A DNA stretch of 64,000 nt from Bugula neritina (Eukaryota; Animalia; Bryozoa): positions 26,254,343 to 26,318,342 of the forward strand of contig OZ037766.1 of NCBI GenBank assembly GCA_964035545.1. Direction: 5' to 3'. Every line of letters begins with the position of its first letter. Within the stretch, counting starts at the first letter, position 1. A program made the translations under genes and the position numbers. Positions 5,001 through 35,035 of this stretch are shown here, one piece after another. The notes below the pieces were generated by a model, which worked only from the letters and a program-made list of their open reading frames with translations, was not told where the DNA came from and ran no database searches.

Positions 5001-7479
5001 TATATGTAGAATCTGTCATTTATATATGACTGAGTTAACTATTGTTAGCATATATACACTACAAAGTAATAATATATTATATACCACAGAGTAGTATTAT
5101 ATTATATACTACAGAATAGTATTATATACACAACAGAGTATTATTATATTCTGTTATTCACTGAGTTAACTATTATCAGCATATTCTGTATACAGTTTTA
5201 TTAGTTCTTACACTTACCTACATAATACTAGCTTGTCATAATTTACTATAGCTTACTTACACTGTTATGAAGGCGATCTAACAATTAAAGACAAATACAA
5301 TCTTTGGTTATCTTGTACAGAGTGTAGAAATTATGCTATTTTTCTTACCAAAACTACTTATCAATATTTATATATAATTATGTTTTGGGTGTTTTATCAT
5401 AGTCGACCAATAGAAATCCATCTACTTAAAATATGTGTGTAGTTATCTTCTCTATTAATATATGCACAAGACTATAATTTATGCACCTACAGAGTATACA
5501 GTGTTGCATTTTCAATTTCTAACATCTATTTCTAAGTCCAAGATAATTCATTACATTATGTTCAATACTTTGTTGTACATTGCAGCTCTACACTCTATTG
5601 TTTCCAGATCGTATACAGGTTAACACAAAAAGATGACAAAATAAAAGCCCCATTTTAAATGATCACAGACATTAATCGGCTATTTCGTACTACTATGCTG
5701 CTATGCTATACCTTAGAGACACATCGCTTTCAATTTATTGCCTGACCCTAAATACATGATATATGGCAGAGAGTCATCAACATTGAACACATGATTTTAA
5801 TACCTTCCTGAATTGCCTTGCTGACAAAAGAACCTATACGTCATCACAATGACCAGTACATCCTTTTAGCATCTCCCTGCTATAAGACACATGCCCTTTT
5901 AAAGAGCTAAATTTACCCCTACAACACCCTATCTCCAAGAAGCTGACATTCACAGGCAGGAACTCCTCAATGCTATCCAAAAAAACTTGCAGGAGCTACT
6001 TCGCTATATATAGCTCTGCTGGATATGCCAGAAGTGTTCCTCAATCCAGGTAGATCCAACAACAGCAGAGAAGTTAGCATATTTAAGAGAATCCATAATA
6101 AAGGTAATTATTAACTTCTATTATAATATATCCGTATAGTGATAATAATATTATAGTGAATGCACCTATAGGAACCAAATATATTATTGCATTTGTAAAT
6201 TGTACAATTAAATACCAACACACTTTACAACAAAGTTACTACAAGATCTCCTTTATCGGGTCACAACTATTAATATTAATTTTACATGCAAGTCAATATA
6301 AGTTAGACCTTTAATTTGTGCCTAATGCATGCACACGCATATAGATATAATTAAAAGTCTGATTTTCAGTTTGATATCTATTAAAAAAGAATAACCTGAT
6401 AATTTAGGTAATTATAAAACTTATATTTACTGCAAAATTTAAATTCAAATAACTAAAGTCACAAAATTGAAACAGTTTGATAAAATAAAGTGGTGGAAGA
6501 GTTTAATGTCCAAAAAATAATTTTTATTGTCCTTGAGAAAACAACTCCAATTAATCTAGCCTACAACTGCAATAATTGACTTTGAAACTACTTGTAGAAA
6601 TAAATGCATCTGCAAGATTTGTCTAAAATATTATACAATCATAAATGCTGGTTACTTTACTATTAGTTTTTCACTGGTTTACAGAATTTAGAGTTGAACT
6701 TTTATAACAGTCTTATGAAAAGTTGCTAAGCACAGTAATCTTGATGTTTATATTAGTTCAAAGCTTGGATTTTATCATAAAGTGTAGTTCAAAATACAAA
6801 TTATTTCGTAGTGGGTCTGTTGTGATTGGAGTTATGTCATCATGGTTTTTGGACAAATAACAAGCCTTGCGATAGCTGAGAACTGAATACACATGTGATC
6901 ACCTGAAGACTTATGATACTGGTTTGAACTTGGTAAGCTGAGCTAATATTAAGATTACTATTACTATATTATAATTGCTGACTCGTGTTACTTATCTGGT
7001 CAGACAGGCCTTGGCCTGCTACTGCAGAAAACAGGAGCTTTAGAAATATTATGTGTAATATAATCTAATTATTGCATTTCATTCTTGAGATATAGGAAGA
7101 TCACAACATTGTAATTTATATTGTCAAAATAGACTATATTTTTTGCACACTGAAATAAAAGAAAATATCATAATTTTATGAAATTTGTAAGCAATTTGGA
7201 GTTGTCTTTCCAGAGACGAACTAAAGCTTCTATGACAAAGTTAATTTATACAATTATGAATGTATAAGTATTTGTGATCAGATCAAATAATAGTATTAGC
7301 TATATAAACACTCATTCTGGTTGTCAGAAATTATGCTTAAATTGCCGATTTGCAACAAAATAATAATTCCTCATGCCCTGAAAAGGATTTTGTGGAACAA
7401 ATAAAAGAACTATTGATATAAAATTTCCTGTCTACACAACACTGCACACATGTGACAATATGCAATCAGTCTGCATAAA

Positions 7480-7945
7480 TTAGAGCAAAATGCATCCGGA
7501 TGAATCAGAACTTGGATATCGAGCCAAGAGGTCTTCAGCGCTGCAGGCACATTTCAATAACAAGATAACTCTTTTGTTATCCATTCCACTATCTTGTCTC
7601 ACTGTGTAGTGGCAGTTAGGGCTGTAATGTACCTCTTCATCGTCACGGAAGTTTTGACAGTAACAATTACGTTTTAAAATGTACTTCCTGTAAAATTTAA
7701 TAAATTTAGTTGACGTTAGAGTAACCTGTTGATAGCAACTGCCTTTTATACATTAAGGGTTTTAACTAAAGTCTCATGATGCTGGTATAAAAGAATAGTG
7801 CTCACCCTCCACGCCTTTCTGGAGCCTCATAGCGACATCTGCTGTCAGTGTGAAATCCTTCAATTTTTTTGTGGCGAGTCACTTGCCCAGAAACTGTAGC
7901 AGGCTCATCAGAGTAAGACTGGAATTTTCGGCCTGGGTTCGCCAT
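7480..7945 (-). CDS. Cluster gene A: 115-aa double H-x4-C...CxC protein ending in CaaX (CILL); coding exons 7945-7806 and 7687-7480; non-coding exon 1 with donor at 8514
   Basis: Hand-spliced: MANPGRKFQSYSDEPATVSGQVTRHKKIEGFHTDSRCRYEAPERRGG|KYILKRNCYCQNFRDDEEVHYSPNCHYTVRQDSGMDNKRVILLLKCACSAEDLLARYPSSDSSGCILL*. Phase-2 GT-AG intron shared by all six paralogs. Confidence 0.88.
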
Positions 7946-8514
7946 TTCTAGATCAATAAGAAAGTTGCTACAAAACTGATGAACCAGGTTCTATACAGCA
8001 GAAGTTATGTAATATTTTTTATTTGAACGACCACCTTAAAAATACTATTGATATGATAGAGATTAGCACTTTAAATTATTGACACAGTTATACCATGTAT
8101 AAAACTTAAACAGAATAAAGCTAAGACTCTACAGTAATAAGCTTTTTATCTACGAAGCTTTGCTGTAGATATAGCTAGTTTTTTGTTAATAAAAACTCCG
8201 ACGTTTCTCATTTATAGCACTAGTTATGGAAGAAATGGAAGAGAGAGCTGTAATTTTTTGTGCTATGCTATGTTGGACTCTAATAAAGATTTTAGCATGC
8301 ACTACTTTATTTTCCACAAAATCACTTGGAGAAAAATTAAAAATCTTACTAAACATGTGTATAGCAACTGTTTCAAAATTTTCTTTCATCAAAAATAACA
8401 AAGTACCATAATCTATTGTATAGTATAACACATAATGCAATACAATTTGCCACCCAAAATTAACATCAATATTTATAGTATTGCAATAACTAGAGCTGAA
8501 GACAAGCCACTTAC

Positions 8515-8770
8515 CTTTAATAGTTAACAGTTAGAACAGTCAAATATAGAAAGACAGAACTGTAACCAGATGCAGGTTAATACTTTTATCACAGATTCTC
8601 TCTAAATGTAGAAGCATAGAAAAGGCAGCTGCTTTTATATGCCATCTTTAGAAAACCAACTCGTATTAAATTTTTTCATGACACATAAATGTTGTGAGTT
8701 GGAATTCCAAACTATAAGCTGATCATTACAAAATCAATTGCAGTTATTTCAGCATGGAATTTCCATTAGA
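8515..8770 (-). promoter_or_regulatory. Gene A promoter and non-coding exon 1: TATAAAA 8633-8639; kB-like sites 8701-8708 and 8756-8764
   Basis: GGAATTCC and GGAATTTCC on the + strand; the proximal site is AGAAAACC (8650) versus GGAAAACC in B; donor AAG|GTAAGT at 8515/8514. Confidence 0.7.
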
Positions 8771-10258
8771 CAATAGAATAATGCATGCAGCAAACTAGAA
8801 TTCAAGTGCAGTATGTGATATACTATTATATCTCTCATGGTTCTAACTACAATCGTCTACCAGTACGCAGCAAACTAATTGCAAGAGTTTAGTATCACTG
8901 CACATTAAGATGCAGGCAATTTCATGTATGTTGGTCTGTGCACATAATCCTCAGTCTTGGTGTATGAAAAATTCATGTGAAAAGTTTCGGATATTTTATT
9001 CTCTATATTGGCTGTGAGTTAAATAGTTCAAAGTTCGATTGATCTCAGTAGTTAAGATTCTTTAAATTTAATAAAAATATTAAATTAACAACACAGTGTA
9101 TAGCCAGCAAGAAGCCAGGGTTTAAGCATTGCTTCTATCTACAGCTCATGTGTATTTTACTGCAGTTTTGCACTACAAACCAATTTCAGCATAACAAAAT
9201 AAACAGATTTTGGTGGTAGGTAGTTTTTGATGATGGCTAAACCCACAGACTAATAAACAGCTATCCTGCATAAGAATAGCATACTGACATAATAGCACTA
9301 TGGCAGACTGGCTCTAGTCAACATCTTATTACCCATCAAATTCAACAATTAGTTGTGGCAGAAAGCTATTGGCTAATCAGGTGATGCTGTGTTAGTCTAA
9401 AATCTAAATGTATTTCTACTGGAGGCGCCTACAAAATGTGAATGGTAATTTTGAGCATTATAAGCTAGACAGTATTCATATTTTGAGTTCAGTTTTTTTT
9501 AGGTAGCAGTTAAGGCATTGGGCCAAACTATATATAGCTGAATTGCACCGTAAAAAAGAAATTGTAATTGCCGTTGTTAAGTTTTGTGTTAGAATGTTAA
9601 AGATCTGTATATAGCACATTCAACATAAGTTAATTGTTGATGATTAAAGTAATTTCTATCTATAAAAAAATATAAAAGGGAAAAGTACTTTAATACAGTA
9701 AGCATATATTAGGCAGTAAAAGTTTTAAATGTTGAGGTTGCACAATTTTGAAAGTAAAATACTCTTTTATTATTCTTTTGAATAATTATACTTCAAAATG
9801 CAGTTTTTAGGTTCATCTCCACCTAGGACAGAAAACAGGATCTTTAGAAATATTATGTGTAAATTGTCCAATCTAATTATTGCATTTCAATCTTGAAATA
9901 TAGAATGGTCACAATTGCAATTTATACTGTCAAAATAGACTACATTTTTGCACATTGAAATACAAAACTACCATAACTTTATGACACTTGGAAGCAATTT
10001 GGAGTTGTTTCTACGAAGACAAACTGAAACTTCCATGACAAGGTTTGTTTAAACAAATATATTATGCATAAATAAATATTTGTGATAAGATCAAAATAAT
10101 AGCATCAGCTATATATAAGCACCCATTCTGGTGGTCAGTATTTACCCTTAAATTACTTATTTACAACTAAATAAAAACCTCCTAATTTGAAAAGGATTTT
10201 AAAGAACGAATAAAAGAAGTATTGATATAAAGTTTGCTGTCAATATGAAATCAGCCTG

Positions 10259-10757
10259 CTAGGAGATAATGCATCCACATTGATCAGGGGTTTCGGCCCC
10301 CCTGAGTGGCTTTGGATAGCGACTTAAGAGGTTTTCAGTGTAACAGGCACATTTCAATAAAAGGATCACTCTTTGGTTCTCCATCCCACTATCTTGTCTC
10401 ACTGTGTAGTGACAGTTAGGGCTGTAATGTACCTCTTCACCATCATCAAATAGTTCACAGTAACAGTCACGTTTTAAAATGTATTTCCTGTAAAATTGAA
10501 TAAATTCAGTAGACACTAGAGTAACATCCTAATAGTAACTGTTATAAATTCTACATTACTTGTTGCAAATTAGTATATAAGAGTTTTGTGCTATTGGCAT
10601 TAAAGAATAGTACTTACTCGCCACGCCTTTCTGGAGACTTATAGTGACATTTGCTGTCCATGTGAAATCCTTCAATCTTTTTGTGACGAGTCACTTGCTC
10701 AGAAGATGTAGCAGGCTCAATGGAATAGTTTGAGAACTTGCAGCCAGGATTTGTCAT
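10259..10757 (-). CDS. Cluster gene B: 122 aa, ends QCGCIIS (CaaX); coding exons 10757-10618 and 10487-10259; exon 1 donor at 11325
   Basis: MTNPGCKFSNYSIEPATSSEQVTRHKKIEGFHMDSKCHYKSPERRGE|KYILKRDCYCELFDDGEEVHYSPNCHYTVRQDSGMENQRVILLLKCACYTENLLSRYPKPLRGAETPDQCGCIIS*. Confidence 0.88.
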
Positions 10758-11325
10758 TTCTAAATCGATAAGAATATTGTTCCAAAACTGTTGACTCTAA
10801 TTCAAAACAAAAAAATATGTAACATTTTGTTATTTGAATGACTAGCTAAAAATAATATTGGGTTGATAGAGATTAGCACTTTAAAATGATGATGAAGTTA
10901 TCCCATATATAAAACTTAAAAAAATAAAGCTAAGACTCTACAGTAATAAGCTTTAACTTATCTACAAAGCATTGTTGTGGGCAATGCTAGCTTTTTGTTA
11001 ATGTAAAAGCCATTGTTTTGAATTTATAGTAATAGTTATGAGAGAAATGGTAAAGGGTTGTAATATTTATGCTATGTTAGATTCTAATTAATATTTGATC
11101 ATTTTTCACTATATTACTCAGAGAAAAATTTAAGATATTACTAAACATGTGTAAAGCAACTGTTTCAAAATCTCCCTTCATCACAAAAGTAACAAAGTAG
11201 CGTAATCGAACATAGTTATAGTATAACATATACAAGTTATATATAATGCAACACAAATGGTCACTCAAAATTAGCATCAATATTTATAGTATTGCAATAA
11301 CTAGAACTGAATACAAGCCACTTAC

Positions 11326-11570
11326 CTTTAATAGTTAGTAGGTAGAACAGTCAAATATAGAAAGAGAGGACTATAACTGAATAATTTTATCACAAATTCT
11401 CTCCATGTGCAGAAACATAGAAAAGGCAGCTGCTTTTATATGCCATCTTTGGAAAACCAACTCGTATTAGATTTTTTCATGACACATAAATAATAAGAAT
11501 TGGAATTCCAAACTATAAGCTGATCCTTACATGATCAGTTGCTGGTATTTCAGCATGGAATTTCCAGTAG
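11326..11570 (-). promoter_or_regulatory. Gene B promoter: TATAAAA 11434-11440; kB-like sites at 11451, 11502, 11557
   Basis: GGAAAACC, GGAATTCC, GGAATTTCC; homologous to the promoter of A. Confidence 0.7.
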
Positions 11571-12599
11571 GCAATAAAACAATGCATGCAGCAAACTGGA
11601 ATTTAATCCTGGGTATGCGATATACTATTGTAATATCTCTCACAGTTCTAACTACAAATACAGTATCCACCAGTACGCAACAAACTAATTGCAAGCGTTT
11701 AGTATCACTGCACATTAAGATGCAAGCAGTTTTGTTTATGTTTGTTTGATGTGCACAAATATAATTCTTAATCTTAGTCCATGAAAAATGTATGTGAAAA
11801 GTTTTGGATATTTTATTTTTTAAATTGGCTTTGAGTTAAATAGTTCCAAGTTCGATTGATCTCAGAGATTCTTTCAATTAAAAAGAAACATAAAGCTCAC
11901 AAAATTATAGTGTATAGCTGGTAAGAAGCCAAAGCTGACCCATTGCTTCTATCTACAGCTCAGCTTATGTGTATTTTGCAGTTTTGCACAGCAAATCTTT
12001 CAGCATAACAAAACAAACACTTCAAGTGATTATAGTAGGTAGTTTTTGATGATGGCTAAACCCACAGACTATTAAACAGCTATAATATTGCATAAGAATA
12101 TATAATCATAGCATACTGGCTATACTTAGAACCTTTCAACTATAGTCAGCATTTTGTAGCCAATCAAATTGTGGTGGAAAGCTGTTGGCTAATCATGCTG
12201 GCCATACAATGGGAATAGGAATTTTTGAGCATTATAAGCTAGACAGTATTCTTGATTTCAGTTCAGTTTTCCTTTAAGTAAAAGCTAAAGCATTGGGCCA
12301 AACTATAGCTGAATTGCACTGTAAAAAACAAATTTCGACTACCAATACTGAGTTTTAAGTTAGAGTGTTGGAGATCTGTTTGGAATATGGCACATTCAAC
12401 ATGAGTTCATTATTGTCTATAATTAAAGTTATTTCTAGCCATAGAAAAAAGTTAAAAGCAGTAAGTAAGTTAATATAGTCAGCATATATTATGCAGTAGA
12501 AAATGTTGAAAATTGAGGTTGTACACAATTGTAAACTTCAACTGCTCTTCTATCATTCATTCGAATAATTATATTTCAAAAATAATATGTTGGAATATA

Positions 12600-12870
12600 T
12601 TTTATGAGAATTCCCAAATGTAAAGCAAGATCTGCAGCTATTTTTAGATTAATGCAAAACATAATAGCCTGCATTTTCTGAAAGGCAGGCTTGGAAATCC
12701 AACTTGGAACATAACTTTTTGCTTGCATGTACAATATTCCATTATTGCTTGATGGAATTCCCATTGAATGATTTATGCAAGAAAATGGAAATTCCAATGC
12801 TCAAGTTCCCAATAACAACAATGACTCATCACATACAGCGCTATTCCTAATTATCACACGTGATGTTTTA
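12600..12870. promoter_or_regulatory. Distal kB/AP-1-like enhancer block, copy 1
   Basis: GAGAATTCCC 12606, GGAAATCC 12693, GGAATTCCC 12754, GGAAATTCC 12787, TGACTCA 12822; homologous to 18220-18430. Confidence 0.55.
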
Positions 12871-13516
12871 ACACTTCACAACAAACTATACTGAGATGTG
12901 AAATGTAAGGCTTGAGTTGATGCTTTACCTTTGTACATTTTTCGGTGCTTTTAGTCAATAAAAGTATTTATAGAAAACATAAACATGATTATATTTGTAT
13001 TCAAACATGGAACTATGTAACCACGTTTGTATTTTTTCAGATCAAGGCAGCCTCATGCTGCCAATAAATTTGTGGCTGAACGCTATTGGCTAACCACGTC
13101 ATGCCGTATTAGTCTAAACGAATTTTGTAGTTTATTAGTAATTTTTCTAGAATGATTATCAGCAACTTTTTGCCATTTGATATATAAATGTGTAGTCTTG
13201 AGTTTAGTAGAAGAAACATAAGGTGTTATTTTTTGTTTAACTTGTGAATAATTATTGTCTCTAATTTAATTTTAAAACCAGAAATGAGGTTTGAAAAGAG
13301 TAATCTGGTATAAGTGAATAAATTTATTGATGGTAATCAGTAATTGTAACTGTGAATGTAATTTTAAGTAATTAAAATTGACAAAACAAATTTTATAAAT
13401 GAAATCTGTACCTCTTTCATTGGCCACTCAGCATAATGCAGAATAAATGCACAATAAAGTAAATATTTTGTAGTCAAATGACATTCAAAAACAGAACACT
13501 AGGTATATTGTTATAA

Positions 13517-14237
13517 CTAATATCCTGGTTTTGGAGATCGACTCAGCAGTCTTGGATTCACACAATAGCATTTCAGCAGTAAGACAACATTATTAGTACC
13601 AGTGTCTTGCCTCACGGTATAGTGACACTGATCACTGCCATGTACTTCATCACCAGCATCAAATCTTCCACAATAACATTTACGGCGTAGAGTGTAGTTC
13701 CTACAAAATCGTACACATAGATTATATATAACACTGAAGACTAGAATACTTGTACTATTAGCACATAATTGTTAAAAGATCTTCATGATTTCAGTAACTT
13801 AATTAATCATTAGAAGGGAAATATATAGAAGCTAAAACCCGCCTAGTATATGAATGAAAAAAAATAAAAGAAATGTTATTTCAAGTGGTTGAGTTTTTGA
13901 GCCAAATGCTCAAAATATTATTTTAATAAGTATTCATATAAAAAAACACTCCTAACTTAGAATTTTTATAATTAAAGTTTAGGTTGAACAAATATTTTTA
14001 CTATTTACAGTAGTATCTGCACAATAATTATTCTATATCACATCACCTGTTGCAAATAATATTATTGAGATCTCATTTTATAGCATAGAATACTTACCGC
14101 CCATTCCACTGTGCCGGCCCATAGCAACAATTGCTGTCAGTGTGAAATCCTTCAATCTTTTTGTGTGACACAACTTGCCCAGAAACTGTGGCAGGCTCGT
14201 TAGAATAAGATGAGAAGGTGCGACCACGATTTGCCAT
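13517..14237 (-). CDS. Cluster gene C: 107 aa, no CaaX; coding exons 14237-14098 and 13700-13517; exon 1 donor about 14729
   Basis: MANRGRTFSSYSNEPATVSGQVVSHKKIEGFHTDSNCCYGPAQWNGR|NYTLRRKCYCGRFDAGDEVHGSDQCHYTVRQDTGTNNVVLLLKCYCVNPRLLSRSPKPGY*. Confidence 0.86.
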
Positions 14238-14729
14238 GTCTAAATAAGAAACAAGGTACAGCTATTTTAAAATTGATGACCATGACTTTATGCAAAAGTT
14301 TATGAAATATTTGTTTATTTATTTCAACAGCAAATATCTAAATAATTAATAAATGCTTCTTAACTTTAGTTTTGCATGATTATTTCTATTCTAAAAAAAT
14401 TACCAGTTAATGGTAATTAGCAAAATAAATGTAATTTCAAGAGCAAGCTGTTTTATTCTAAAGTAGCTTTGACTTTAAATTTCTTTGAAACAGTAACATA
14501 TAACTTGGTTGATGATGACTATCGGTAAAGTGAACTTATAAAATTATTAAAAGTTTGTGTTTCTAGAAAAAGATATATCAATATACTAGGTAGGTAATTA
14601 ACAATACAGAGATAACTAACTTAGCTAGTGTTTTCCGTATACATTGACACACATTTTTGCAACCTCATCTAAATGCAATACTTCTGCTTATACAAAATTC
14701 AATATCGCAGTGCATAGAAAGACACCTAC

Positions 14730-14960
14730 CTTCGTATGCAATACTTGTGCTTACACAGAGTTCAATATCACTGATTCTCTCCAAATGCAAGGACATTGAA
14801 AGTGCAGCTGCTTTTATATGTCCAGTTTGGAAACCCAACATGTATTAGATTTTTTATTATTATTCAAAAAGATCTGGAATTCCAATATTACTATCCTGAA
14901 TTGCATCACTTAGCCAATGCAAAGCTATTGTGACGTATTAGCATGGAATTCCCAATTAGT
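14730..14960 (-). promoter_or_regulatory. Gene C promoter: TATAAAA 14812-14818; kB-like sites at 14829, 14876, 14945
   Basis: GGAAACCC, GGAATTCC, GGAATTCCC; same order as in A and B although the spacers have diverged. Confidence 0.7.
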
Positions 14961-15504
14961 CTACAATAGAGCAATCAATGCATGCGGCAACCTATTATGT
15001 GAATAGAAGCACATATAATAGCATGACTGATGCATTGCAGTAACAGCTCCCTGAGTGCCCTGTATATGTATATTAGAAACGAATGAATTTCTACCTACTG
15101 CGGGCCATATTACCTTCATCTGCTGCTCTAACCATACATCAAATGCCAGGTTTTATAATCAGATCATATAACAACTGGTATACAGTTTTTTGCCCGCGAG
15201 TTGAAGGCCTGTATATAATACTATATATATAATACATTCAACATAAGTGAATATATTTCTAACTGTAACAAAAAACAAGAGTTATAAGTAGTTTATTACA
15301 GTCAGATTATGCTGTTAAAATTTTGAAAGTTAAGGTTACACAATTTCGAAATTAAAACCCTCCTTTATCACTCATTTGAATAGTTATACAAATAAAAATG
15401 CAGCTTTAGGTTTATATTTAGAGTTGGAAGTGTCGGCGAAGTGAATGAAATTCTGCTTTTAAATCATTTAACTTAAGAAGGATTCAGTTACGGGTACACC
15501 TGAA

Positions 15505-16425
15505 CTACATTATTTCACATCTGCTCTGTTCAGGATCGGCATCTATCAATATTGGATGATTACAGTAACATTTTAGCAGCAAGAATGTGCGATTATTCCC
15601 TGTGTCCTTGATAGTGACATAGTGACATTGTGGGCTATAATGCAACTCGTTGGCGTCATAAAAATTCCCACAATAGCAGTAACGTTCAAGATAGTAACCC
15701 CTGTAAACAGTAAAGACAGTAGAAATACGATACATATTATTACCGTTTTTTTCTATAAGCAGAAGGAGGTAGGTTGGGGTGGGAGATCAGCAGATTTAGA
15801 TAATGGCTGTGTAATTGCTATATACTCACTAAAAGGCACCAAGTTATATGAATTACTAAAAGGTCTGTTATGCAATTACAGCAATACTCATTGAGATTAT
15901 GTTGCTCTGTAGCTATAGTTGCTGTTCGGAAATTTAATATAACATTTTATTCTGCTAACCAGGTCAAAGTTCAAATGAGTAAATTAATTTTATAAGTTAC
16001 CTACAGAGTTTACTTGTTTTGTCAATTAGCGGAGAGCATTTTTTGTAGGCACTTAAAACGTTATAATTGACATAAACTTGCTTGCTAAAAAGAATTTTGT
16101 TGCTTTTTAAATTTGTATTGTCATGAAGCAAAATAAATTTGTTCTTTTTTTCTGTTGTCTCATAAATAGTATTTCAGACAGAAATTATGAAAAAATATTG
16201 AATTATTATTAATAATTTAACAAACATGGGATTAAGTTGCTTAGTCCATCAAAATGCATGGTGACTGAGCATTGGCCTATATACATACCCGCCAGGGCTC
16301 ATCCATTTTTTGTAGCAACAATTATTATTAGTGTGGAAAGTTTCAATCTTTTTGTACTTTGTAGGTGAACAGGTGTCCAGACCATCTTTATAATGTTTAC
16401 ATTCTTTAGGTCCAGGATTTGCCAT
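15505..16425 (-). CDS. Cluster gene D: 110 aa, ends RCEIM (CaaX-like); coding exons 16425-16289 and 15700-15505; exon 1 donor at 17653
   Basis: MANPGPKECKHYKDGLDTCSPTKYKKIETFHTNNNCCYKKWMSPGG|GYYLERYCYCGNFYDANELHYSPQCHYVTIKDTGNNRTFLLLKCYCNHPILIDADPEQSRCEIM*. Confidence 0.87.
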
Positions 16426-17653
16426 GATATCTAAATCAATGTAAATGGTCCATGTTGTCATACTAATAGTAATCAATAATTTGTAGTTCTGTAGAGTACT
16501 ATACTGGAAAAAATAATTGACAGCTTAGTTATCTAGTAGGTTCAAGAAATTGGTAGCCACATCACTTATGGAGTATTCTAAGTTAAATTAAAAACATATT
16601 TATATGTATTATGTACTGTTCTGCAACCATTTTACAGTTAGCATGCTTTAGTGTATGAAATTGAGTAATTGATGTGCATGCAAGTATTTATTATTGTTAC
16701 AGACTTATTACAATATATTACATCAAAAGTTTTGTAATTGTACATGTATCTACTATCTATATAACACAGCAATATATAAAACAGTTTATACATATACATT
16801 ATACATTTATATATAATACAGTTTATTAAGCAAAACATTGTGCTAGAAGTGTATTAGCTTTCTCTTCTATAGACATATCAGCAAAATGTTGTATTAGATT
16901 AAACAAATGAATATTTTTTAAAGGTGTAGTGTATTGTTTTGCTATAAATAATGCTGATGATAATATAAGTTTGGCTTTGGTCTTGCTGTTTGATTTAGTT
17001 GGAAATGAGATGAGCAAATAATAATTTTGAAAGCAAAATATTCAAACAAATTGATAATAATAAGAATACATGACTATATTTTAAAAAATATAGAAGCTTT
17101 TAGCTGATAGGCTAGCATTTTGTTTAACTTTTGGTTGATTATTATATGCATCAAAACTTCCATGTCAATTACTCAAATTATATGTATATATATGTAAACA
17201 AATCCATTATAAAAATTAAATTAATTTGTTCTCATCTCATTATTTATAACTGGCTAAGTCACAGCCTCGTTCAAAAAGTTGTATTAAACAAACATGCTTA
17301 TGGTATTCTAAGAACTCCACTGGTAACATGCTAGATATTGAAACAATATTATGTCAAAGGTGCTGACTATAATGTTAACATACTCATTATATAGAGACAA
17401 ACATAAAAAGTTATTTGAGTTTTACAGATTGGTGCATAAAAACTAAAAACCTGCATGTATATTATATAGATTGCAAGTTAATATAAATATTAGTAAATAA
17501 CATACAAAATAATTTGTTTTTACCACAAAATTGTCACTGTATTTTCTTTTTTATATTATTATATATATAATAGTGCGAGATTAAATGTAGTAAACAATAG
17601 GTTTGGTAGCTAATTTGATAGACATATATGCTAAGATATAAAGTATTACTTAC

Positions 17654-17830
17654 TGAATCAGTTAGCTACTTGTTCTAAGCAAGATATACTCCAACAAAAA
17701 TTTTTTTTCATAAACTTAGAAGCAATAGGAAGATGTTGCTTTTATACTACGCTGTTGGAAATCCAGTTTGTAAAAAAAGTTTCCACTGATTAACTTTGGA
17801 AATGGGAAATTGCTTACTTGGGATTTCCAA
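17654..17830 (-). promoter_or_regulatory. Gene D promoter: TATAAAA 17740-17746; kB-like sites at 17757, about 17777, 17820
   Basis: GGAAATCC, AAAGTTTCC, GGGATTTCC; closely similar to the promoter of E. Confidence 0.7.
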
Positions 17831-18219
17831 TAACAGCCGTTAGAATTGCATGTTTCATGGATTTTTAAATTTTCATTAGTAATAACAATAATAGTATTCT
17901 GTTTTGTTGTACAACACGCACGCTCATAACACATTTATTAGAGTTTACAATTTTCGATAAGTTGCAGCTGATAGGAATAAAAAACTCATAAATAGATTGA
18001 AAAACTTTTATCACACATTGGCATTTGCAAATTTACACTGCTTCAGCTATAAATAACGTGGTTCAGGTAACAATATAAGAGTAACATTGTGTCAACCTGC
18101 ATTTAATATAATTATGTATTTATAAACGTTCCATTATCACTGTAATTTTATGTCATTATTATGGTATAAACTATGATATTACTCTAGAATTGTTTTTTAT
18201 ATTAAACGCACGTTTACCA

Positions 18220-18430
18220 CCATGCTTTTCTGAAAGGCAGGCTTGAAAATCCAACTTGTAACATAAGATTTTGCTGGCATGTGCAATATGCAATTATAGC
18301 TGGATGGAATTCCCATTAAATGCTTTATGCAAGAAAATGGAAATTCCCATGCTCAAGTTCCCAATAACAATCATGACTCATCATAAACTAAGCTATTCCT
18401 AATTATCACATGTGATGTTTTAACAGTTCA
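18220..18430. promoter_or_regulatory. Distal kB/AP-1-like enhancer block, copy 2
   Basis: GGAATTCCC 18306; GGAAATTCCC 18339 (GGGAATTTCC on the - strand, full kB consensus); TGACTCA 18374. Confidence 0.55.
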
Positions 18431-19359
18431 CTGCATACAGTGTTAAAGCACAAATAATATATAAGAATTATATTGCTTTAATTGTGAACATTAATGTTAC
18501 TTAACTAATTAATAATGGCAATAAACATGTGCATCCATCAGTTATTCGGTAAAAACTCATTTTGAAAATAACTTTTGTATTCTTATTGCAACTTACAAAT
18601 ATTTATAAATATGTTTCTAATCTTTGTTCAAACATAAAAACTGATAGCCATGTAGATGTTAATAGCAGTTAAACTCTCATAACTGCGTTATAAAAGTTAT
18701 TTTAATTCTTATGAAATAATATTACAAAGCATAGCTCATAAAACTAGTCCTTTAGTAAAAAGATAACAACATCTGATGTATGTAATCAGCAATTAAACTT
18801 CTTCTGCTTTGCTAATGCTAACAAGGGATCAAAGGTCAGACTATTTTATACTTGAAAAAATTATAATATGCACATAAATTCTGTGTGCTTGAAGTGTGTG
18901 GACTGTCCCATTTAATCAATGTGTTGCAGCTTTCAGTTGTAAGTAATAACTGGTAGGAAAAGTGTTGATTATATCATGTATGTAGGGGACACTGAAACTT
19001 TTATTGAATTATATATAATCATATTATAATATGCAAGGCATTTATAACAGTAAACTTCAAAAAATCAATGTGTGGATTTCAAATACAGTTTATTTGGCTA
19101 ATATATTATTCCATATTTAGTTTTTTGCAATATTTTAAATGCTGTTAACTTGCTTTTGTTATCAATTTAACATGCTATGTATTTTGCAGTTAAAATGATA
19201 TTTTCCAAAAAGTGTATACATTTAAAGATTTAATAATGTTTTAAAAACTAGCAAAAATTTATGAAAACACATTCAAAATTACAATTTATAACTTGATATA
19301 TCACATATTTTAAACAAAATTTTTTAAAGAATCAAGAGGAAACGTTAGATGAATATGCT

Positions 19360-20165
19360 TTAGACAAAGTCCGTAGTCTGGCATTTGCAATTTGAAACAA
19401 AGTAGGTTTGGCCAGTGCGGCGATCTTTATATCCAATGTAGTTACAATCTGGGTGGTAATGTTGCTCTTCAGCCCCATTAGTATAATTCCAGCATTCACA
19501 TCTCCTCACCAGGTAATATACTTTACCATACCATGGGCTAGAATTTTAGAAACTAACTTTTTAAACCATCTTGTGTTTTACATGATTCTAAGACTGCATA
19601 CATGACACAAAGTTTTTGGCACATCAAATGTTCACTAGTATCCTAATATACAAACTTGTGGCAACATCTAATTTTATTAACAAACAGAAGTGTTCGATGT
19701 TATTGGCCGAGAGCATAAACTTATCAAAATCTTTAATATTTGAATATAATTAATCTGATACCAAATAATCAGAATATGACAAGCTTAATATATATCATGT
19801 TTTGCATTGAATAAGAAATTACCTTAAATATTATTTATATCTTATATTTATTATCTCATTATCTTAATTAGGATTCAGAAGTTAAATCTTAGCCTTCCTA
19901 TACTAGATAGGAAATACACTTCTCAATAAAATTTATTATCTGGCAAAAAATCATTTAAATATATTATAAGATAGTTATAGTTAAAATAAGGGTATTCTGT
20001 AACAGCATTATTGAGTTCTACTCACTCGTCAACAGACTTTGATTCGTAAGAGCAGCTGGAAGCAGTGTGGGGTCCTTCAACCTTCTTTCTGGGATGAATA
20101 GTTGATTCTTTGCTTTCACGGGTGTTAACATAATAGTTGCTTGGCAAGGTGGGTGTGAAAGCCAT
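19360..20165 (-). CDS. Cluster gene E: 105 aa, ends TTDFV; coding exons 20165-20026 and 19537-19360; exon 1 donor at 21096
   Basis: MAFTPTLPSNYYVNTRESKESTIHPRKKVEGPHTASSCSYESKSVDD|PWYGKVYYLVRRCECWNYTNGAEEQHYHPDCNYIGYKDRRTGQTYFVSNCKCQTTDFV*. Confidence 0.86.
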
Positions 20166-20188
20166 ATCTCTGGGTTAACTGTAATAAT

Positions 20189-20190
<2 letters not shown>

Positions 20191-20266
<76 letters not shown>
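20191..20266. repeat. (TA)n microsatellite just inside intron 1 of gene E
   Basis: Direct observation. Confidence 0.97.
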
Positions 20267-20269
<3 letters not shown>

Positions 20270-21096
20270 TACTATAAAGCTTTGTTTTCATGTGTAAATT
20301 TATTTGTATTTTAACTTAGAAATGTAAACTTACTTTTCATGCAAAAAATACTATTTTGATAGAAATGATTTTTTTAGATATAATATCAATATGAAAAAAT
20401 AGAAATGCTTCTGCAATTATTTTTATATATGCATCTTCACAATTAGTTAATTTTTCATTGTGACTAACTAAATTTATTGCCACCATTCCTAACCGAATTT
20501 TATTACAGCTTACAGCTGAAGATTTTTTTACAACCATAACATCACGATTCAAGTATATAAAAATAGTAACTACATTGTAAATTAGTAAATATAACTTTTT
20601 ATGTAATAACTTCTAATCTCTATATTGCTCAAACGATAATATGTATTTCAACCTATGAACATTATTATACATTATAAAGTTACATTAGGATTCAATAATC
20701 TTAGAGCTGCCAAAGAAGCAGCTGCATGCTCTCAACAACTTATATCAAGCTGAAAGTTTTCTATTTCCTTCTAATAACTTCACTTCATTATATACGAGGC
20801 ATTTAAATAATATGTTCACTGTGATCATTATCAGGATGACCGTAAGATAACACATAACTTGAGTTTCATGAATTAGTGCATCCTGCTGGGATACCACATG
20901 CCCACAGATTAAACAGAGTAGTATAGTGAAATATATATTAGATACTGCTACATATTATGCAAAACAAATATTGATTTACTATATATTTTAGTTAAATTTA
21001 CCAGAGTATGACATAACATATGTTTAAGAATAAGCAGAGTTTTAATAAACAAGTATTAAACCCTAATTTAATGTAGAGATATAAAATATTACTTAC

Positions 21097-21340
21097 TGAA
21101 TGAGTTATAGCTACTTGTTCTAGGCAAGATACTTTAGCAAACTTTTTTTCATAAATTAAGAAGCAATGAGAAGATGCTACTTTTATACTACGCTGTTGGA
21201 AATCCAGTTTGTATAAAAAAGTTTCCACTGAAATTTGTTGACTTGGGATTTCCAACAACAGCCATTGCATCATAGCTTGATGGAATTCCTAATAAATGTT
21301 TTATGCAGGAAATGGAAATTCCAATGCTCAGGTTGCCAAT
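21097..21340 (-). promoter_or_regulatory. Gene E promoter: TATAAAA 21181-21187; kB-like sites at 21198, about 21218, 21245, 21282, 21314
   Basis: GGAAATCC, AAAGTTTCC, GGGATTTCC, GGAATTCC, GGAAATTCC; the last two are the distal enhancer block joined directly to the core promoter. Confidence 0.7.
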
Positions 21341-21831
21341 AGCAACAATGGCAGAACATACTCAACTTTTTCCAAGTTGAGCTCCCATTGAGTAACTGAG
21401 TTACAGCTTTCAGTTGTAAGTAATAACTAGTTATATTTATGAAATGTGCTGATCAAGTCATCTATGTTATAGTGGACATTGAAAACTTTATTGAGTTATA
21501 TATGCATAATCATAATATTATTATGCAAGGCCTTCATAACAGTAGGTAAATTTAGAAAAAATCATGTATAGATTTCAAATACAGTTTCTTTGGCTATAAT
21601 AGATCATTTAAATTCTTGTATTAGGCTATTATAAATTACTTTAAATTGCTTTTATCAATAATCTAATACATTCTATATTTTCAGTTAAAGCTCTGTGTTT
21701 CAAAAAATTATATACATGATAAGCTGGCAAATTACTTTTTATGAAAACATATACAAGTAGGTGACAAGTTAAGAAAGTGCATCTTTTATACTTTAAAAAA
21801 ACGTCAAGAGACAATATTAAATGAATATGTT

Positions 21832-22618
21832 TTACACAAAGCTTTTAGCCTGGCATTGGCAATTCAAAACAAAAAAGGTATGTCCGGAGCGGCCATCTTT
21901 ATATCCGGTGTAGTGACAACCAGTGTCGCCGTGCTGCTCTTGAGCCTCGTCGGTATATCTCCCGCAGCCACATCTTCTCACCAGATAGAACTTCTGATTG
22001 TAGCATGGACTAAAAGTTATGAGAATAGCTTTTTTAATAATCTTGTGATTTACGTAACTATATAAGCAGCACACTTGACACAGAATGTTACTGGCACATC
22101 AAATGGTCACTATAGATGTATGCTAATATCGTGCTAACTCCTGGCAGTTTGTTAAATATTGCGGTAGTTATTTGCATTAACTTGTCAAAATTCTCAATAC
22201 TTGAAGAGAATTAAGCTAACACCAAATAAACGGCATATGAAACGTTTATGTTTTCATTGAATAAAAAATTATCTTATAAAATATGATACAAGTTTTATAT
22301 CATTTACAGTTTACACAAATTTATGATTCAGGCAGAAGTTAGATTTTAGCTTTTTAGTGTAGATAGAAGATAAATTCCTCATTAAAATTTAGTATGTGGC
22401 ATAAAAAAACATTCAACTATTTTATAAAGTAGTTATAATAGTTGAAATACAACATCATAATTGAGTTCTACTCACCCGCCAATAAGCTTTGATTCATAAG
22501 AGCAGCTGGCAGCAGTGTGGGGCCCTTCAACCTTTTTCCGGGAATGAATATTTGACGACTTTGCGCTGTCGAGGGTGTCAACGTAATAGTTATTTCTCAA
22601 ACTGGGTGTGTAAGCCAT
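21832..22618 (-). CDS. Cluster gene F: 106 aa, ends AKSFV; coding exons 22618-22476 and 22009-21832; exon 1 donor about 23254
   Basis: MAYTPSLRNNYYVDTLDSAKSSNIHSRKKVEGPHTAASCSYESKLIGG|PCYNQKFYLVRRCGCGRYTDEAQEQHGDTGCHYTGYKDGRSGHTFFVLNCQCQAKSFV*. Confidence 0.86.
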
Positions 22619-23254
22619 TTCTGTGCCGTAACTGTAATAAATGACAGCCATGCTTACTTGAGAGTTTGATTAACATATGTAATTTTATTTGTAATTTATA
22701 CCCATGTATAACACATGTGGTAAGTTATTTTTATATTATAACTCAGTATTTTAAACTTTCTGCGCAGATAAAAATAAGAATTTAATACAAAGCAAAACTT
22801 AAAAATTATTATTGAAAACAAAAATAGTATGGTATTACAAATATTAAAATGAATATATTATTTAGAATTTGCCATGTTAACACTATTAGCTAAACAGTGT
22901 ATCTGTTTTTAACTGAATTTTTTCTACTTGTTTATAGTCTTAGTTTATATTAAAGCTGTAAAGGTTTACTAATTAAAAAATTTTGAACATACAAAAATAA
23001 TATTCACAGTTGCAGAGCAACAGAAATGATTTTCTTTTGTAAAAAGCTGCAACCTCTTCAATTTAACTCAAAAAATTGTAAGTGACTATTTAATATCATG
23101 TCTTAATGTAGCTGACAATTTGTTTGCTATACAAGATACTTAGATAATAATACATGTTAACACTACGAGCTGCATACTGCAGTGTTGAAAATATTTTTCA
23201 GAAAAAGTAAATCAGTCATTGAAAGTCTAAAAATAATACAATTATTTTACTCAC

Positions 23255-23400
23255 TGTGTTGTTCAAGACTCTGATGCTGGATAGAAACACTCTATTTTCA
23301 GTTATGGCGTAGCAACACATCATCTCCTCCTTATATACTCGCCTGTTGGAAAACCAGTTTCAAATCCCACAAACTTTTTTTGCCGTTCTGGATTTTCCAG
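23255..23400 (-). promoter_or_regulatory. Gene F promoter: TATATAA 23331-23337; kB-like sites at 23348 and 23390
   Basis: GGAAAACC 10 nt from the TATA box; GGATTTTCC. Confidence 0.65.
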
Positions 23401-24699
23401 AAAAACAATGATGTAGTCTTTTAGCAACTATGCGAGCATCTGATTGGATAAATTAAAAATTATCAGTAATTAATGTTTCACATATGCACATCAGCTTTAT
23501 TTTCTTATGAACATGTGGTGTTCATAACTAAGCGTTTTACTGCGGAACATATTCAGTTCCTGTCTTGCTAATAATGTAGATTAGATATTAGGCCAAGTGT
23601 TATATTGTATAGTGTGTATCTACATTATGTCATAATTACATGTAATGTTATTGCATCAATAAGTACGAGTATATAAAATGATTGTATGAGACATGCATAT
23701 ACTAGTGTCAATGAGTTCAATTAATAAGTGAATAGTTGTTTAGATTCAAGCTCGAGGCCAATTATTACTCAAGTATTCAAATTTATAGTGATATTTTATT
23801 CCTTGTGATTAATACATAAGTGCCGGACACAAATTTCATCTAGGCGTATATTAAATACTCATACATATCTAAGCAATCATCTATACATACTGTTTGAGTG
23901 TTGCATACTCAACAATGTTGATTTATAATAGATCTTGTACTCATGCTGCTGGTTTCTTAAGTTGATGTTTAAACTTTTAGGCCAGCTCAATGATTAGCAG
24001 CCAAGAGTAGTCAGCACTAGTTACCTACTAGTTCTGTACTACTACGAACTGCTGAATGAAAACATCATTGACATGGGTGCAAAAAGTTATCATCTCAAAC
24101 AATCTGTAGATAATAGCTTATAAAATATATGGGGATATTTTATTACTGCATAAGTGAAGTGTGTCGGGGATTCCTCAACAGTCAGCTAAGTATAAAGGTT
24201 TCTATGCATATTGACACTGAAATCAAAACACTTAAAAAGCTAGAGTTATATATATTTCACTACATATTCTTAAATAGCCAACACCCGTTGCTACTAAACA
24301 TTTATCAGGTAGCTTTGCTAAATTTAGGTGATGCCAACAAGCAGTGGATCACATATCAGATATTTATAGGGACTGGCTGGCAAAGCTGTAGCTGCTGCTG
24401 CTATGTCAGGTCATACAACCTTCAAACAGTCTGTAGATGATAGCTAAGGTATATAGGGTTATTTTATTACTGCATAAGTGAAGTGTGTCAGGGATTCTTA
24501 GATGTTTATTGGAAAGTACTATAGATGTATTATTTTCATTTCAGGAACTAAAAATTGTATATATTAGCTAGAAAAACAGTTTTACTAACTAAATATGCAC
24601 ACTATCAATCACAAACAGTATGTAAGATTGTATTTTGGTATGTTTTATATATACTTAATGTTGACCTTAAAAAATTCAATTGCCAAAAGATAATACATA

Positions 24700-31321: not shown

Positions 31322-31344
31322 GTCAGCCTCAGCAATATTGGTAC

Positions 31345-31795
31345 TGTATCGGTTTGTGTTTGTGTCTGGTTGCAAGATATGCTTTAACTACTAGCCAACT
31401 TGGCAACAGGTTTTCGAGTTTATTAACTGTCAAATCGTACCCTATAAAATGGGAAACATTAGAAATTGTATAAATAAGTAGTCACAATATAAATCAAAAT
31501 TCAGAGGAACACTATGAATATTACAGAACCAAAAAATTGACATGAACTATTGTAATTCTAATAAACTTACAATATTGATGCGTGGATAAAAATCTTAGCC
31601 ATCACAATACCGAAACCGATAGTTTGTCCATACAAAGTGTGTAAATATGGCGGTTTGATCATGATACACTGACTCATGCAGTACAGTGAATGAACTAGCT
31701 CTGCCAGCTAATAGTAGCTTTGGTGAAAGCTTTTGAAGCTTGAAAGCTTTAATGATTGGCTGCCTGCCAATACTTCTGGGTGGCATACCAATACA
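31345..31795 (-). repeat. 5' LTR (451 bp)
   Basis: Direct repeat of 24939-25389. Confidence 0.96.
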
Positions 31796-32924: not shown

Positions 32925-33580
32925 GCAATAACTAATTATAGAAGCTATGAAACCCTGGCCCAGTAACACACAACACACAAAGATACATAGGCACACACAC
33001 AACACACAAAGATACATAGGCACACACACAATACACAAAGATACATAGGCACACACACAATACACAAACACACACACACAATACACAAAGATACACAAGC
33101 ACACACACAATACACAAACACACACACAACACACAAAGATACATAGGCACACACACAATACACAAACACACACACACACACACACAATACACAAAGATAC
33201 ACAAGCACACACACAATACACAAACACACACACAATACACAAACACGCACACAATACACAAAGATACATAGGCACCCACACATAGCTAAACTTAATGCCT
33301 GCATTATTTACTAAGGCCACATGTACTGTAGCTGGGCAGCAGGGTATAATCTTCAAGCTTTGTTGATACAAAAGATTCTAGAGAGTTCTTCTTGTAGACA
33401 TTTCAGGCAGCTGTTTAATATGATTATGCTGTTTGTTCAGTAGTGACTGCTAATGATTGGGTATTGGAAATTAGAAATGGAAAATCCCACAAGTCTTGGA
33501 ATTCCAATACCAGTATGCATTCTATTACAAGCATAGTTATCAGCCCTCAGAAATATCATCATAATAATCATATATAACAT
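32925..33580 (-). promoter_or_regulatory. Duplicated block, copy 1: cluster-like promoter with kB sites plus compound CA-rich repeat (32966-33280)
   Basis: GGCAGCTGTTTAATA resembles GGCAGCTGCTTTTATA of A and B; GGAAAATCCC 33479; GGAATTCC 33498. Confidence 0.5.

Positions 33581-34249: not shown

Positions 34250-35035
<786 letters not shown>

Follow-up and report, generated by a model that had tools for sequence, protein, structure and literature searches.

Six tandem genes (A–F) of the bryozoan Bugula neritina share a promoter core in which a site of the kind bound by Rel-homology-domain dimers stands 10 nt upstream of a TATA box. The genes lie on the minus strand, at 7.4–23.4 kb of a stretch of 64,000 nucleotides (contig 2, 26,254,343–26,318,342, of a 216-Mb genome), hereafter called the window. 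The explanation towards which we lean is that these are TATA promoters with a Rel-homology-type site, bound by a signal-activated Rel-homology dimer, so that the family is induced together; the six genes and four further copies elsewhere in the genome probably share one inducible switch. The observations made here are the sites and their enrichment, their conservation among paralogues and between lineages, the fixed spacing and orientation, and the candidate factors encoded in the genome.

A promoter core with fixed spacing

In the sense of the genes, all six promoters of the window read GGNTTTCC-N10-TATAWAA in constant orientation, copy A having GGTTTTCT at the place of the site. On the plus strand the same block appears as TTTTATA (TTATATA in F), exactly 10 nt, and GGAAA[A/C/T]CC, which in copy A is AGAAAACC. 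The core composites are as follows:

8633–8657, minus strand: gene A, TATAAAA (8633–8639), N10, degenerate proximal site GGTTTTCT (8650–8657)
11434–11458, minus strand: gene B, TATAAAA, N10, GGTTTTCC (11451–11458)
14812–14836, minus strand: gene C, TATAAAA, N10, GGGTTTCC (14829–14836)
17740–17764, minus strand: gene D, TATAAAA, N10, GGATTTCC (17757–17764)
21181–21205, minus strand: gene E, TATAAAA, N10, GGATTTCC (21198–21205)
23331–23355, minus strand: gene F, TATATAA, N10, GGTTTTCC (23348–23355)

An earlier note on this DNA had reported these six pairs of TATA box and site, and a gap of 10 nt in each; all of its coordinates and the gap were correct on re-checking, with the site of copy A degenerate. 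Its description of the gap as about one helical turn holds for the edge-to-edge distance only, because the centre of the 8-mer lies 18 bp, or about 1.7 turns, from the centre of the TATA box. The note had also held that the promoters otherwise barely align. This is true between the groups {A, B, C}, {D, E}, and {F}, but within them the promoters are 81–91% (A/B/C) and 90% (D/E) identical around the site. Because A–C and D–E are near copies of one another, the six promoters amount to about three independent observations. When one mismatch is allowed, the composite pattern has 7 matches in the window against 0.12 expected from shuffles, and six of the seven are the sites listed above.

TATAWAA is present in every promoter of the family, and we infer that transcription starts about 30 nt downstream, which would place the proximal site, GGNTTTCC followed by AA, at approximately -48 to -41. 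A consensus splice donor lies 80–125 nt past the TATA box in nine of the ten family promoters, as a short first exon would predict; among the window genes, it lies 83–125 nt downstream in five of the six, and gene C has the weaker GTAGGT.

Ten promoters on three chromosomes

A search of the genome with the last exon of gene B found ten family members: the six in the window, a single gene on contig 5, and a tandem of three on contig 6. On contig 5 the promoter reads GGTTTTCC-N10-TATATAA. Of the contig-6 genes, the first has GGATTTCC-N10-TATAAAA, and the second and third have GAATTTCC at the identical distance from the TATA box; the last exon of the second also holds a stop codon. When the ten promoters, from three chromosomes, are set side by side without gaps, G[GA]NTTTC[CT]AA-N8-TATAWAA is the sole common block. 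A blastn-short comparison between the subfamilies found no further significant DNA match at corresponding places, coding exons included. The family members are old duplicates in which neutral sites are saturated, and in which the site, its orientation, and its distance from the TATA box have been kept.

The strict pattern TGGNTTTCCAA-N8-TATAWAA has six matches in 216 Mb, all of them in the family, and the reversed control has one. Five of the six are genes B–F, and the sixth is on contig 6, in front of another family member. The earlier note had spoken of a promoter grammar shared by the six genes; as a genome-wide grammar, the idea was rejected. The relaxed pattern GGNTTTCC-N{4,16}-TATAAAA has 63 matches against 47 for the reversed control (11 of them at a gap of 10, five of these in the family), the opposite orientation gives 65 against a control of 64, and there is no excess outside the family at any spacing or orientation tried in the genome. 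The composite is private to this family; in other words, it is a family-private promoter core and not a general immune grammar.

Two side observations concern these promoters. The E-box-like word CAGCTG, or a related AGCTG, occurs within about 15 nt past the TATA box in genes A–C (window 8617–8632, 11418–11433, and 14796–14811) and in the three contig-6 genes (after 3171, 4902, and 7180 of L012), and is absent in D, E, F, and the contig-5 gene. A distant B. neritina member, P0009 (L023 5655–5691, VXIV02001775.1), carries a perfect GGGATTTTCC of canonical form, separated by 20 nt instead of 10 from a downstream TATAAAA that lies about 310 nt upstream of its ATG; its nearest relative in the window's genome is a gene at 3.68 Mb of contig 5.

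Conservation between sister lineages

The DNA of the locus is 85–89% identical to two B. neritina contigs (L001 and L032; GCA_010799875.2), and on this basis the window's genome is placed in a sister lineage inside the Bugula neritina complex. Promoters B–F were aligned to L032 and promoter A to L001, the B. neritina contigs being about 15% diverged; the orthologous promoters of E and F were taken from the second B. neritina contig. No annotated homologue came up when the last exon of gene F was used as a query. Between the lineages, 133 of 135 site bases (98.5%) and all 42 TATA bases (100%) are identical, as against 1679 of 1989 other promoter bases (84.4%). Fifteen of the 16 sites are fully conserved, compared with 35% of background 8-mers, and 58 of the 60 spacer bases are kept. 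Among eleven proximal composites in the two B. neritina contigs, the 10-nt gap is retained in all but that of gene A. The retention of the block by paralogues that align nowhere else, together with the contrast between site and flanking bases across lineages, argues that the site, its orientation, and its spacing are under selection.

The promoter of gene A behaves differently. Its proximal site is GGTTTTCT here and GGTTTCTCC in the sister lineage, i.e., damaged differently in each, its site at -69 is interrupted by an insertion in L001, and its conservation overall is only 72%. Given the damage in both lineages and this low conservation, the promoter looks as if it is drifting out of shared control.

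Upstream sites and promoter fossils

Palindromic GGAA(N)TTCC sites also lie farther upstream, at about -60 to -135:

8701–8708, minus strand: gene A, GGAATTCC at -69
8756–8764, minus strand: gene A, 9-mer GGAAATTCC at -125
11502–11509, minus strand: gene B, GGAATTCC at -69, a 12-bp palindrome including its flanks
11557–11565, minus strand: gene B, 9-mer GGAAATTCC at -125
14876–14883, minus strand: gene C, GGAATTCC at -65
14945–14953, minus strand: gene C, 9-mer GGGAATTCC at -135
17820–17828, minus strand: gene D, 9-mer GGAAATCCC at -82
21245–21322, minus strand: gene E, GGAAATCCC (21245–21253), GGAATTCC (21282–21289), and GGAATTTCC (21314–21322)
23390–23398, minus strand: gene F, 9-mer GGAAAATCC at -61

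The pattern GGRAWTYCC has 11 matches in the window against 0.46 expected, and ten of them fall at 8.7–21.4 kb. Where the earlier note had counted one to four more sites within about 150 bp of each TATA box, extra sites are indeed present in all six promoters, but their number is one to three: with GGAA(N)TTCC-type sites of 8 or 9 bp, within 135 nt of the TATA box, the counts from A to F are 2, 2, 2, 1, 3, and 1.

Two further copies of the module were found without a TATA box:

12674–12886, minus strand: promoter fossil 1, about 1.2 kb upstream of gene B, aligning with the gene E promoter
18226–18438, minus strand: promoter fossil 2, 0.5–0.7 kb upstream of gene D, with the module as in fossil 1 and no TATA box

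Both are copies of the gene E promoter, aligned through both 9-mers and the proximal 8-mer, with TTTCAGAAAA in place of the TATA box of E. Fossil 1 retains the proximal 8-mer (12693–12700) and the 9-mers (12754–12762 and 12787–12795), with TTTCAGAAAA at the TATA position. In fossil 2 the proximal 8-mer is degenerate (18245–18252, GAAAATCC on the plus strand), and the 9-mers are at 18306–18314 and 18339–18347. The last-exon search found no family exon downstream of either fossil. Both are conserved in B. neritina L001 (fossil 1 at 7921–8134, fossil 2 at 3002–3215), and these promoter fossils plausibly serve genes B and D as candidate enhancers.

Outside the cluster, kB-like sites were also noticed at window positions 33479–33505, 34933–34959, and 35929–35937. 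The pair GGAAAATCCC and GGAATTCC is duplicated there in a direct repeat of 1454 nt (33256–33555 and 34710–35009; 92% identical); a TATATAA lies 66 nt past the first pair, a solitary GGAAATTCC is also present, and no family exon is near.

The class of the site and the candidate factors

The earlier note had quoted the Rel/NF-kB consensus GGGRNWYYCC. This classical form fails to describe the family: it has no match in the ten 200-nt family promoters, and its only occurrence in the cluster is at 18339–18348, in fossil 2. The Rel-homodimer class HGGARNYYCC, on the other hand, has 9 matches in these 2 kb of promoter against 0.32 expected, a 28-fold enrichment. The words for STAT and ETS and the control words showed no enrichment in the same ten promoters, and STAT, ETS, HSF, NFI, EBF, TEAD, and Su(H) were rejected as readings, since in pattern tests and by inspection none fits all sites. 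The core of the earlier claim stands in that the sites are real, enriched, and conserved under selection, and are of the kind bound by Rel-homology-domain dimers. Nine-mers of the 4+1+4 type are sites of RelA/c-Rel homodimers (PMC9991059), and GGAATTTCC and GGAAATTCC are of this type. It should be mentioned that GGAATTTCC is also a proven NFAT-dimer site, bound by NFAT1 dimers (PMC5855827).

Four genes of the genome encode a Rel-homology domain:

contig 9, 4.686–4.690 Mb: Rel/Dorsal type, closest solved structures Gambif1 and p65, loop RFRYECEGRFAGS, the alanine form, which goes with 4-bp half-sites
contig 9, 3.730–3.736 Mb: divergent Rel, loop RYRYSSEAGRA
contig 1, 16.853–16.856 Mb: p105/p50 type, loop RFRYEVEGKAHGG, the histidine form
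contig 1, 3.55 Mb (exon 3554192–3554368): NFAT5 type, closest to human NFAT5 (1imh, E 2e-7), loop RARYMTEGSRG

Nearly all Rel proteins carry a redox-sensitive Cys in the loop RFRYxCEG. The p105-type domain (L011 1501–1680; contig 1 from 16852769) reads RFRYEVEG, with Val in the place of this Cys, and a perfect GGGATTTCCC lies 1.2 kb upstream of its exon (L011).

The same 9-mers recur elsewhere in the genome, where pairs 10–40 nt apart number 47 against 4 in the control (more than 10-fold enriched). In some of these clusters the sites are canonical kB 10-mers of the GGG type, e.g., five within 80 nt in L027. The arrays of GGG-type 10-mers comprise five within 80 nt at a period of 15–19 nt (L027; contig 6, 15537500–15545500), three at a 40-nt period (L028; contig 3, 9989500–9997500), and three at a period of 21–22 nt (L036; contig 6, 11667000–11676999). 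One cluster has four sites of the 9-mer type (L031 3988, 4019, 4217, and 4253; contig 7, 12895700–12903700), all on the same strand and upstream of exons with a helicase part closest to RIG-I (4a2p, E 1e-10). Taken over 13 site clusters away from the family, the gene content is mixed, comprising LTR (long terminal repeat) elements, a GPCR, an intron, and the RIG-I-like helicase just described, and does not decide the factor.

Several observations weigh against a Rel dimer as the regulator. The classical consensus is missing from the family promoters, as described above, and the distant relative at 3.68 Mb of contig 5 has no such site in 1.5 kb upstream. Paralogy inflates the enrichment statistics and their P-values. 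The proximal 8-mers and GGAATTCC, and likewise GGAAANCC, are GG-N4-CC, one base under a canonical kB site; GGAATTCC and GGAAANCC are best read as one good GGAA half-site and a partial second one. The TT..AA flanks are conserved beyond the usual requirement of a kB site, and the 9-mers also fit NFAT dimers (PMC5855827) in a genome that encodes an NFAT5 orthologue. Finally, the products look cytosolic and bear no immune mark.

Other explanations

Unlikely in our judgement, and the alternative that survives best, is that the NFAT5 (TonEBP) orthologue binds the sites, in which case the family would be an osmotic or ionic stress regulon of a harbour-dwelling animal and not an immune one. The earlier note rightly kept NFAT/NFAT5 open, and its remark that most sites start with TGGAA holds for nearly every site. 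On the antisense strand, the proximal sites (TGGAAANCCAA) agree with the tonicity element TonE, TGGAAANNYNY, at 10 of 11 positions; WGGAAA is about 10-fold enriched in the promoters and the full TonE 7-fold (3 matches in 2 kb against 0.41 expected). The contig-6 promoters have extra GGAAA repeats just upstream, GGAATTTCC is an NFAT-dimer site (PMC5855827), an NFAT5-type gene whose loop reads RARYMTEGSRG is encoded, and small, non-secreted, cytosolic proteins would fit a stress role no worse than an immune role. However, the CC four bases past the GG is invariant, a feature unneeded by TonE but needed by a Rel dimer with two half-sites. The palindromic GGAATTCC sites have no GGAAA core, all proximal sites miss the last pyrimidine of TonE, and elsewhere in the genome identical 9-mers occur in clusters with canonical kB 10-mers of the GGG type. 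A further point in favour of Rel is the cluster by the RIG-I-like gene. Between Rel and NFAT5, sequence alone cannot decide.

Less likely again is that some other dimeric factor reads an extended palindrome, TTGG-N4/5-CCAA, and that the likeness to kB sites is coincidental. In keeping with this, most sites conserve the T and A bases beside them, none of the family-promoter sites meets GGGRNWYYCC, and the 8-mer GG-N4-CC is non-canonical, Rel dimers binding 9–11 bp (PMC9991059). Against it, the 9-mers are textbook Rel-homodimer sites, NFI needs TTGGC-N5-GCCAA, and the patterns of STAT, ETS, HSF, and EBF misfit. We know of no factor family with TTGG-N4/5-CCAA specificity.

It is very improbable that the composite is functionless and kept by common descent or gene conversion among duplicated promoters: the near identity of A–C (81–91%) and D–E (90%) around the site makes the six-fold repetition partly plain paralogy, and the spacer, too, is conserved between lineages (58/60 bases), but subfamilies on three chromosomes that align nowhere else, exons included, keep the site, orientation, and 10-nt spacing in ten promoters, conservation between lineages reaches 98.5% in site bases and 84% in the flanks, and cross-chromosome conversion confined to 26 nt is implausible.

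A model for a candidate switch

In the explanation preferred here, each family gene is driven by a TATA promoter, and of the elements upstream of the TATA box the 8-bp Rel-homology-type site alone is deeply conserved. Behind it stand one to three upstream palindromes and, in genes B and D, the TATA-less fossil promoters farther upstream. After activation by a signal, a Rel-homology dimer would occupy the upstream palindromes and the weaker proximal site. At the latter, its centre would be fixed 18 bp from that of the TATA box, beside TBP, TFIIA, and TFIIB, and may help or gate their assembly, so that the whole family would fire together. The best candidate for the factor is the contig-9 Rel/Dorsal-type protein, whose alanine loop is typical of binders of 4-bp half-sites. 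In this model, we infer the transcription start, the binding factor, the inducibility, and the direction of the effect.

A more far-reaching version, which we consider improbable, is that the family comprises bryozoan-specific, Rel-induced intracellular effectors. In it, the spacing would be mechanically required, the Rel dimer docking directly on TBP/TFIIA/TFIIB in a minimal two-element inducible core promoter, and TATA-less duplicates would be re-used as enhancers. If this were true, the switch could respond to the PKC-activating bryostatins from the animal's own symbiont.

Comparison with known promoters

In the literature, we found no work on cis-regulation in the Bryozoa and nothing relevant on bryozoan Rel/NF-kB or immune regulation. 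The kB/pseudo-palindromic NFAT element of the IL-8 (CXCL8) promoter is 5'-GGAATTTCC-3', and the same 9-mer or its mirror GGAAATTCC is found in both fossils and in the upstream DNA of genes A, B, and E. The human IL-8 site is about 50 bp farther from the TATA box and acts with AP-1 and C/EBP, whereas here the best-conserved element, an 8-mer, keeps a constant distance of 10 nt from the TATA box. The IL-8 element is both a 4+1+4 site of RelA/c-Rel homodimers (PMC9991059) and a site bound by NFAT1 dimers (PMC5855827).

The promoters of insect antimicrobial-peptide genes likewise combine a TATA box with clustered kB-like sites in a clustered, duplicated family. Those of Cecropin A1, Diptericin, and Attacin have a TATA box and several kB-like sites within about 150 bp, are driven by Dif, Dorsal, or Relish, and belong to clustered families that are induced together. 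The insect sites are of the GGG type (GGGRAYYYYY) and the products are secreted, whereas the products here have no signal peptide and some have CaaX-like tails. We know of no rule that fixes insect kB sites 10 nt from the TATA box. The TonE/ORE elements (TGGAAANNYNY) of osmoprotective genes, bound by NFAT5/TonEBP, resemble nearly all of the present sites in their TGGAAA core, and an NFAT5 orthologue is encoded; however, TonE elements are asymmetric, usually distal, and have no need of the second CC half-site, which is invariant here.

A kB site beside a TATA box is also seen in LTR promoters, e.g., the HIV-1 LTR, and two LTR families of this genome have GGAAWTTCC 3 nt before TATATAA, which makes them an independent use of the pairing of a kB-type site with a TATA box. 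They differ from the present promoters in their spacing (3 nt versus 10) and in being mobile elements and not a host gene family. Their direct repeats, 100% identical and 7487 and 6391 nt apart, carry GGAATTTCC or GGAAATTCC before the TATATAA (L021, contig 1, 8558000–8567999, with the site inside the repeat; L022, contig 4, 6565500–6575000), and there are about 25 further copies, one at contig 2 13582036. A 32-nt word, GGAATTTCC-N16-TATAAAA, has about 40 copies in the genome, e.g., at contig 2 17722000–17730000 (L020). It sits within an open frame of 542 codons that belongs to a retroelement, Penelope-like by eye, whose inverted arms of 1344 nt are perfect and whose tail is GIY-YIG-like. The word is therefore not evidence of a promoter class.

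The genes, their products, and their surroundings

All six genes are laid out alike: a TATA box and a short predicted non-coding exon 1, an intron, an exon of about 46 codons with the ATG, and a last exon of about 50–75 codons. Exons were searched singly, unjoined, with annotated B. neritina proteins as full-length proxies; the splice pattern of gene B is consistent with the annotated proteins P0001 and P0003.

11325–11410, minus strand: gene B, predicted first exon, non-coding, running from a putative start about 30 nt past the TATA box to the GTAAGT donor at 11325
8514 (A), 17653 (D), 21096 (E), and 23254 (F), minus strand: donors equivalent to that of gene B at 11325
7510–7945, minus strand: gene A, coding part, ATG at 7945, last-exon match 7510–7686
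10259–10757, minus strand: gene B, coding part, exon 2 at 10618–10757 from the ATG, an intron, and exon 3 at 10259–10487 including the stop
13523–14237, minus strand: gene C, coding part, ATG at 14237, last-exon match 13523–13696
15523–16476, minus strand: gene D, coding part, ATG-bearing open frame ending at 16476, last-exon match 15523–15696
19366–20165, minus strand: gene E, coding part, ATG at 20165, last-exon match 19366–19518
21838–22651, minus strand: gene F, coding part, ATG-bearing open frame ending at 22651, last-exon match 21838–21993

The proteins of the family are about 100–125 residues long, contain two His/Cys modules, and lack a signal peptide; CaaX-like ends (CILL, CIIS, CEIM) are present in some of them. 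The relatives of the window proteins are hypothetical proteins of Bugula neritina. Neither the exons nor the full-length homologues from B. neritina matched any Pfam family. An AlphaFold model is all-beta with a mean pLDDT of 57, i.e., of low confidence; Foldseek found nothing below E 0.37 in the PDB, and the ESM Atlas gave no match. An exhaustive HMMER search returned only proteins of the Bugula complex, a weak match to amphioxus C3YCW5 (E 5e-5), and two long, unrelated-looking matches. The likeness to inducible immune genes drawn in the earlier note finds no echo in the products, for no signal peptide, Pfam family, or fold match marks them as immune effectors.

The copy number of the cluster varies between assemblies (L001 and L032 compared with window 5569–24193). 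In L032, a B/A fusion, with the B promoter on the body of gene A, leaves five genes, and L001 has an additional C-like and D-like pair; the cluster is still gaining and losing copies. Immediately upstream of gene F, a single open frame of 1894 codons (25691–31375, minus strand) with gag, protease, reverse transcriptase, RNase H, and integrase motifs is the apparently intact polyprotein of an LTR retrotransposon, Bel/Pao-like by eye, and it accounts for the GC-rich block at 26–30 kb. Long minisatellite arrays with periods of 43, 38, and 30 nt occupy 37716–39683, and (CA)n tracts lie at 32.9–33.3 kb and 34.2–34.8 kb.

Implications

These promoters are TATA promoters with a Rel-type site, of a known sort, in an orphan family; their spacing is unusually strict and well conserved, and they represent no new kind of regulation. 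The locus offers a compact and highly conserved candidate switch, consisting of an 8-bp site, a 10-nt spacer, and a TATA box, in ten natural variants, which include damaged ones (gene A and the second and third contig-6 genes) and are accompanied by the two TATA-less fossils. The variants provide a test bed for how strictly the spacing between factor and TATA box is constrained, and also for which DNA sequences the Rel and NFAT5 proteins of lophotrochozoans prefer. For the orphan Cys/His-rich family itself, the composite is a first handle on its biology.

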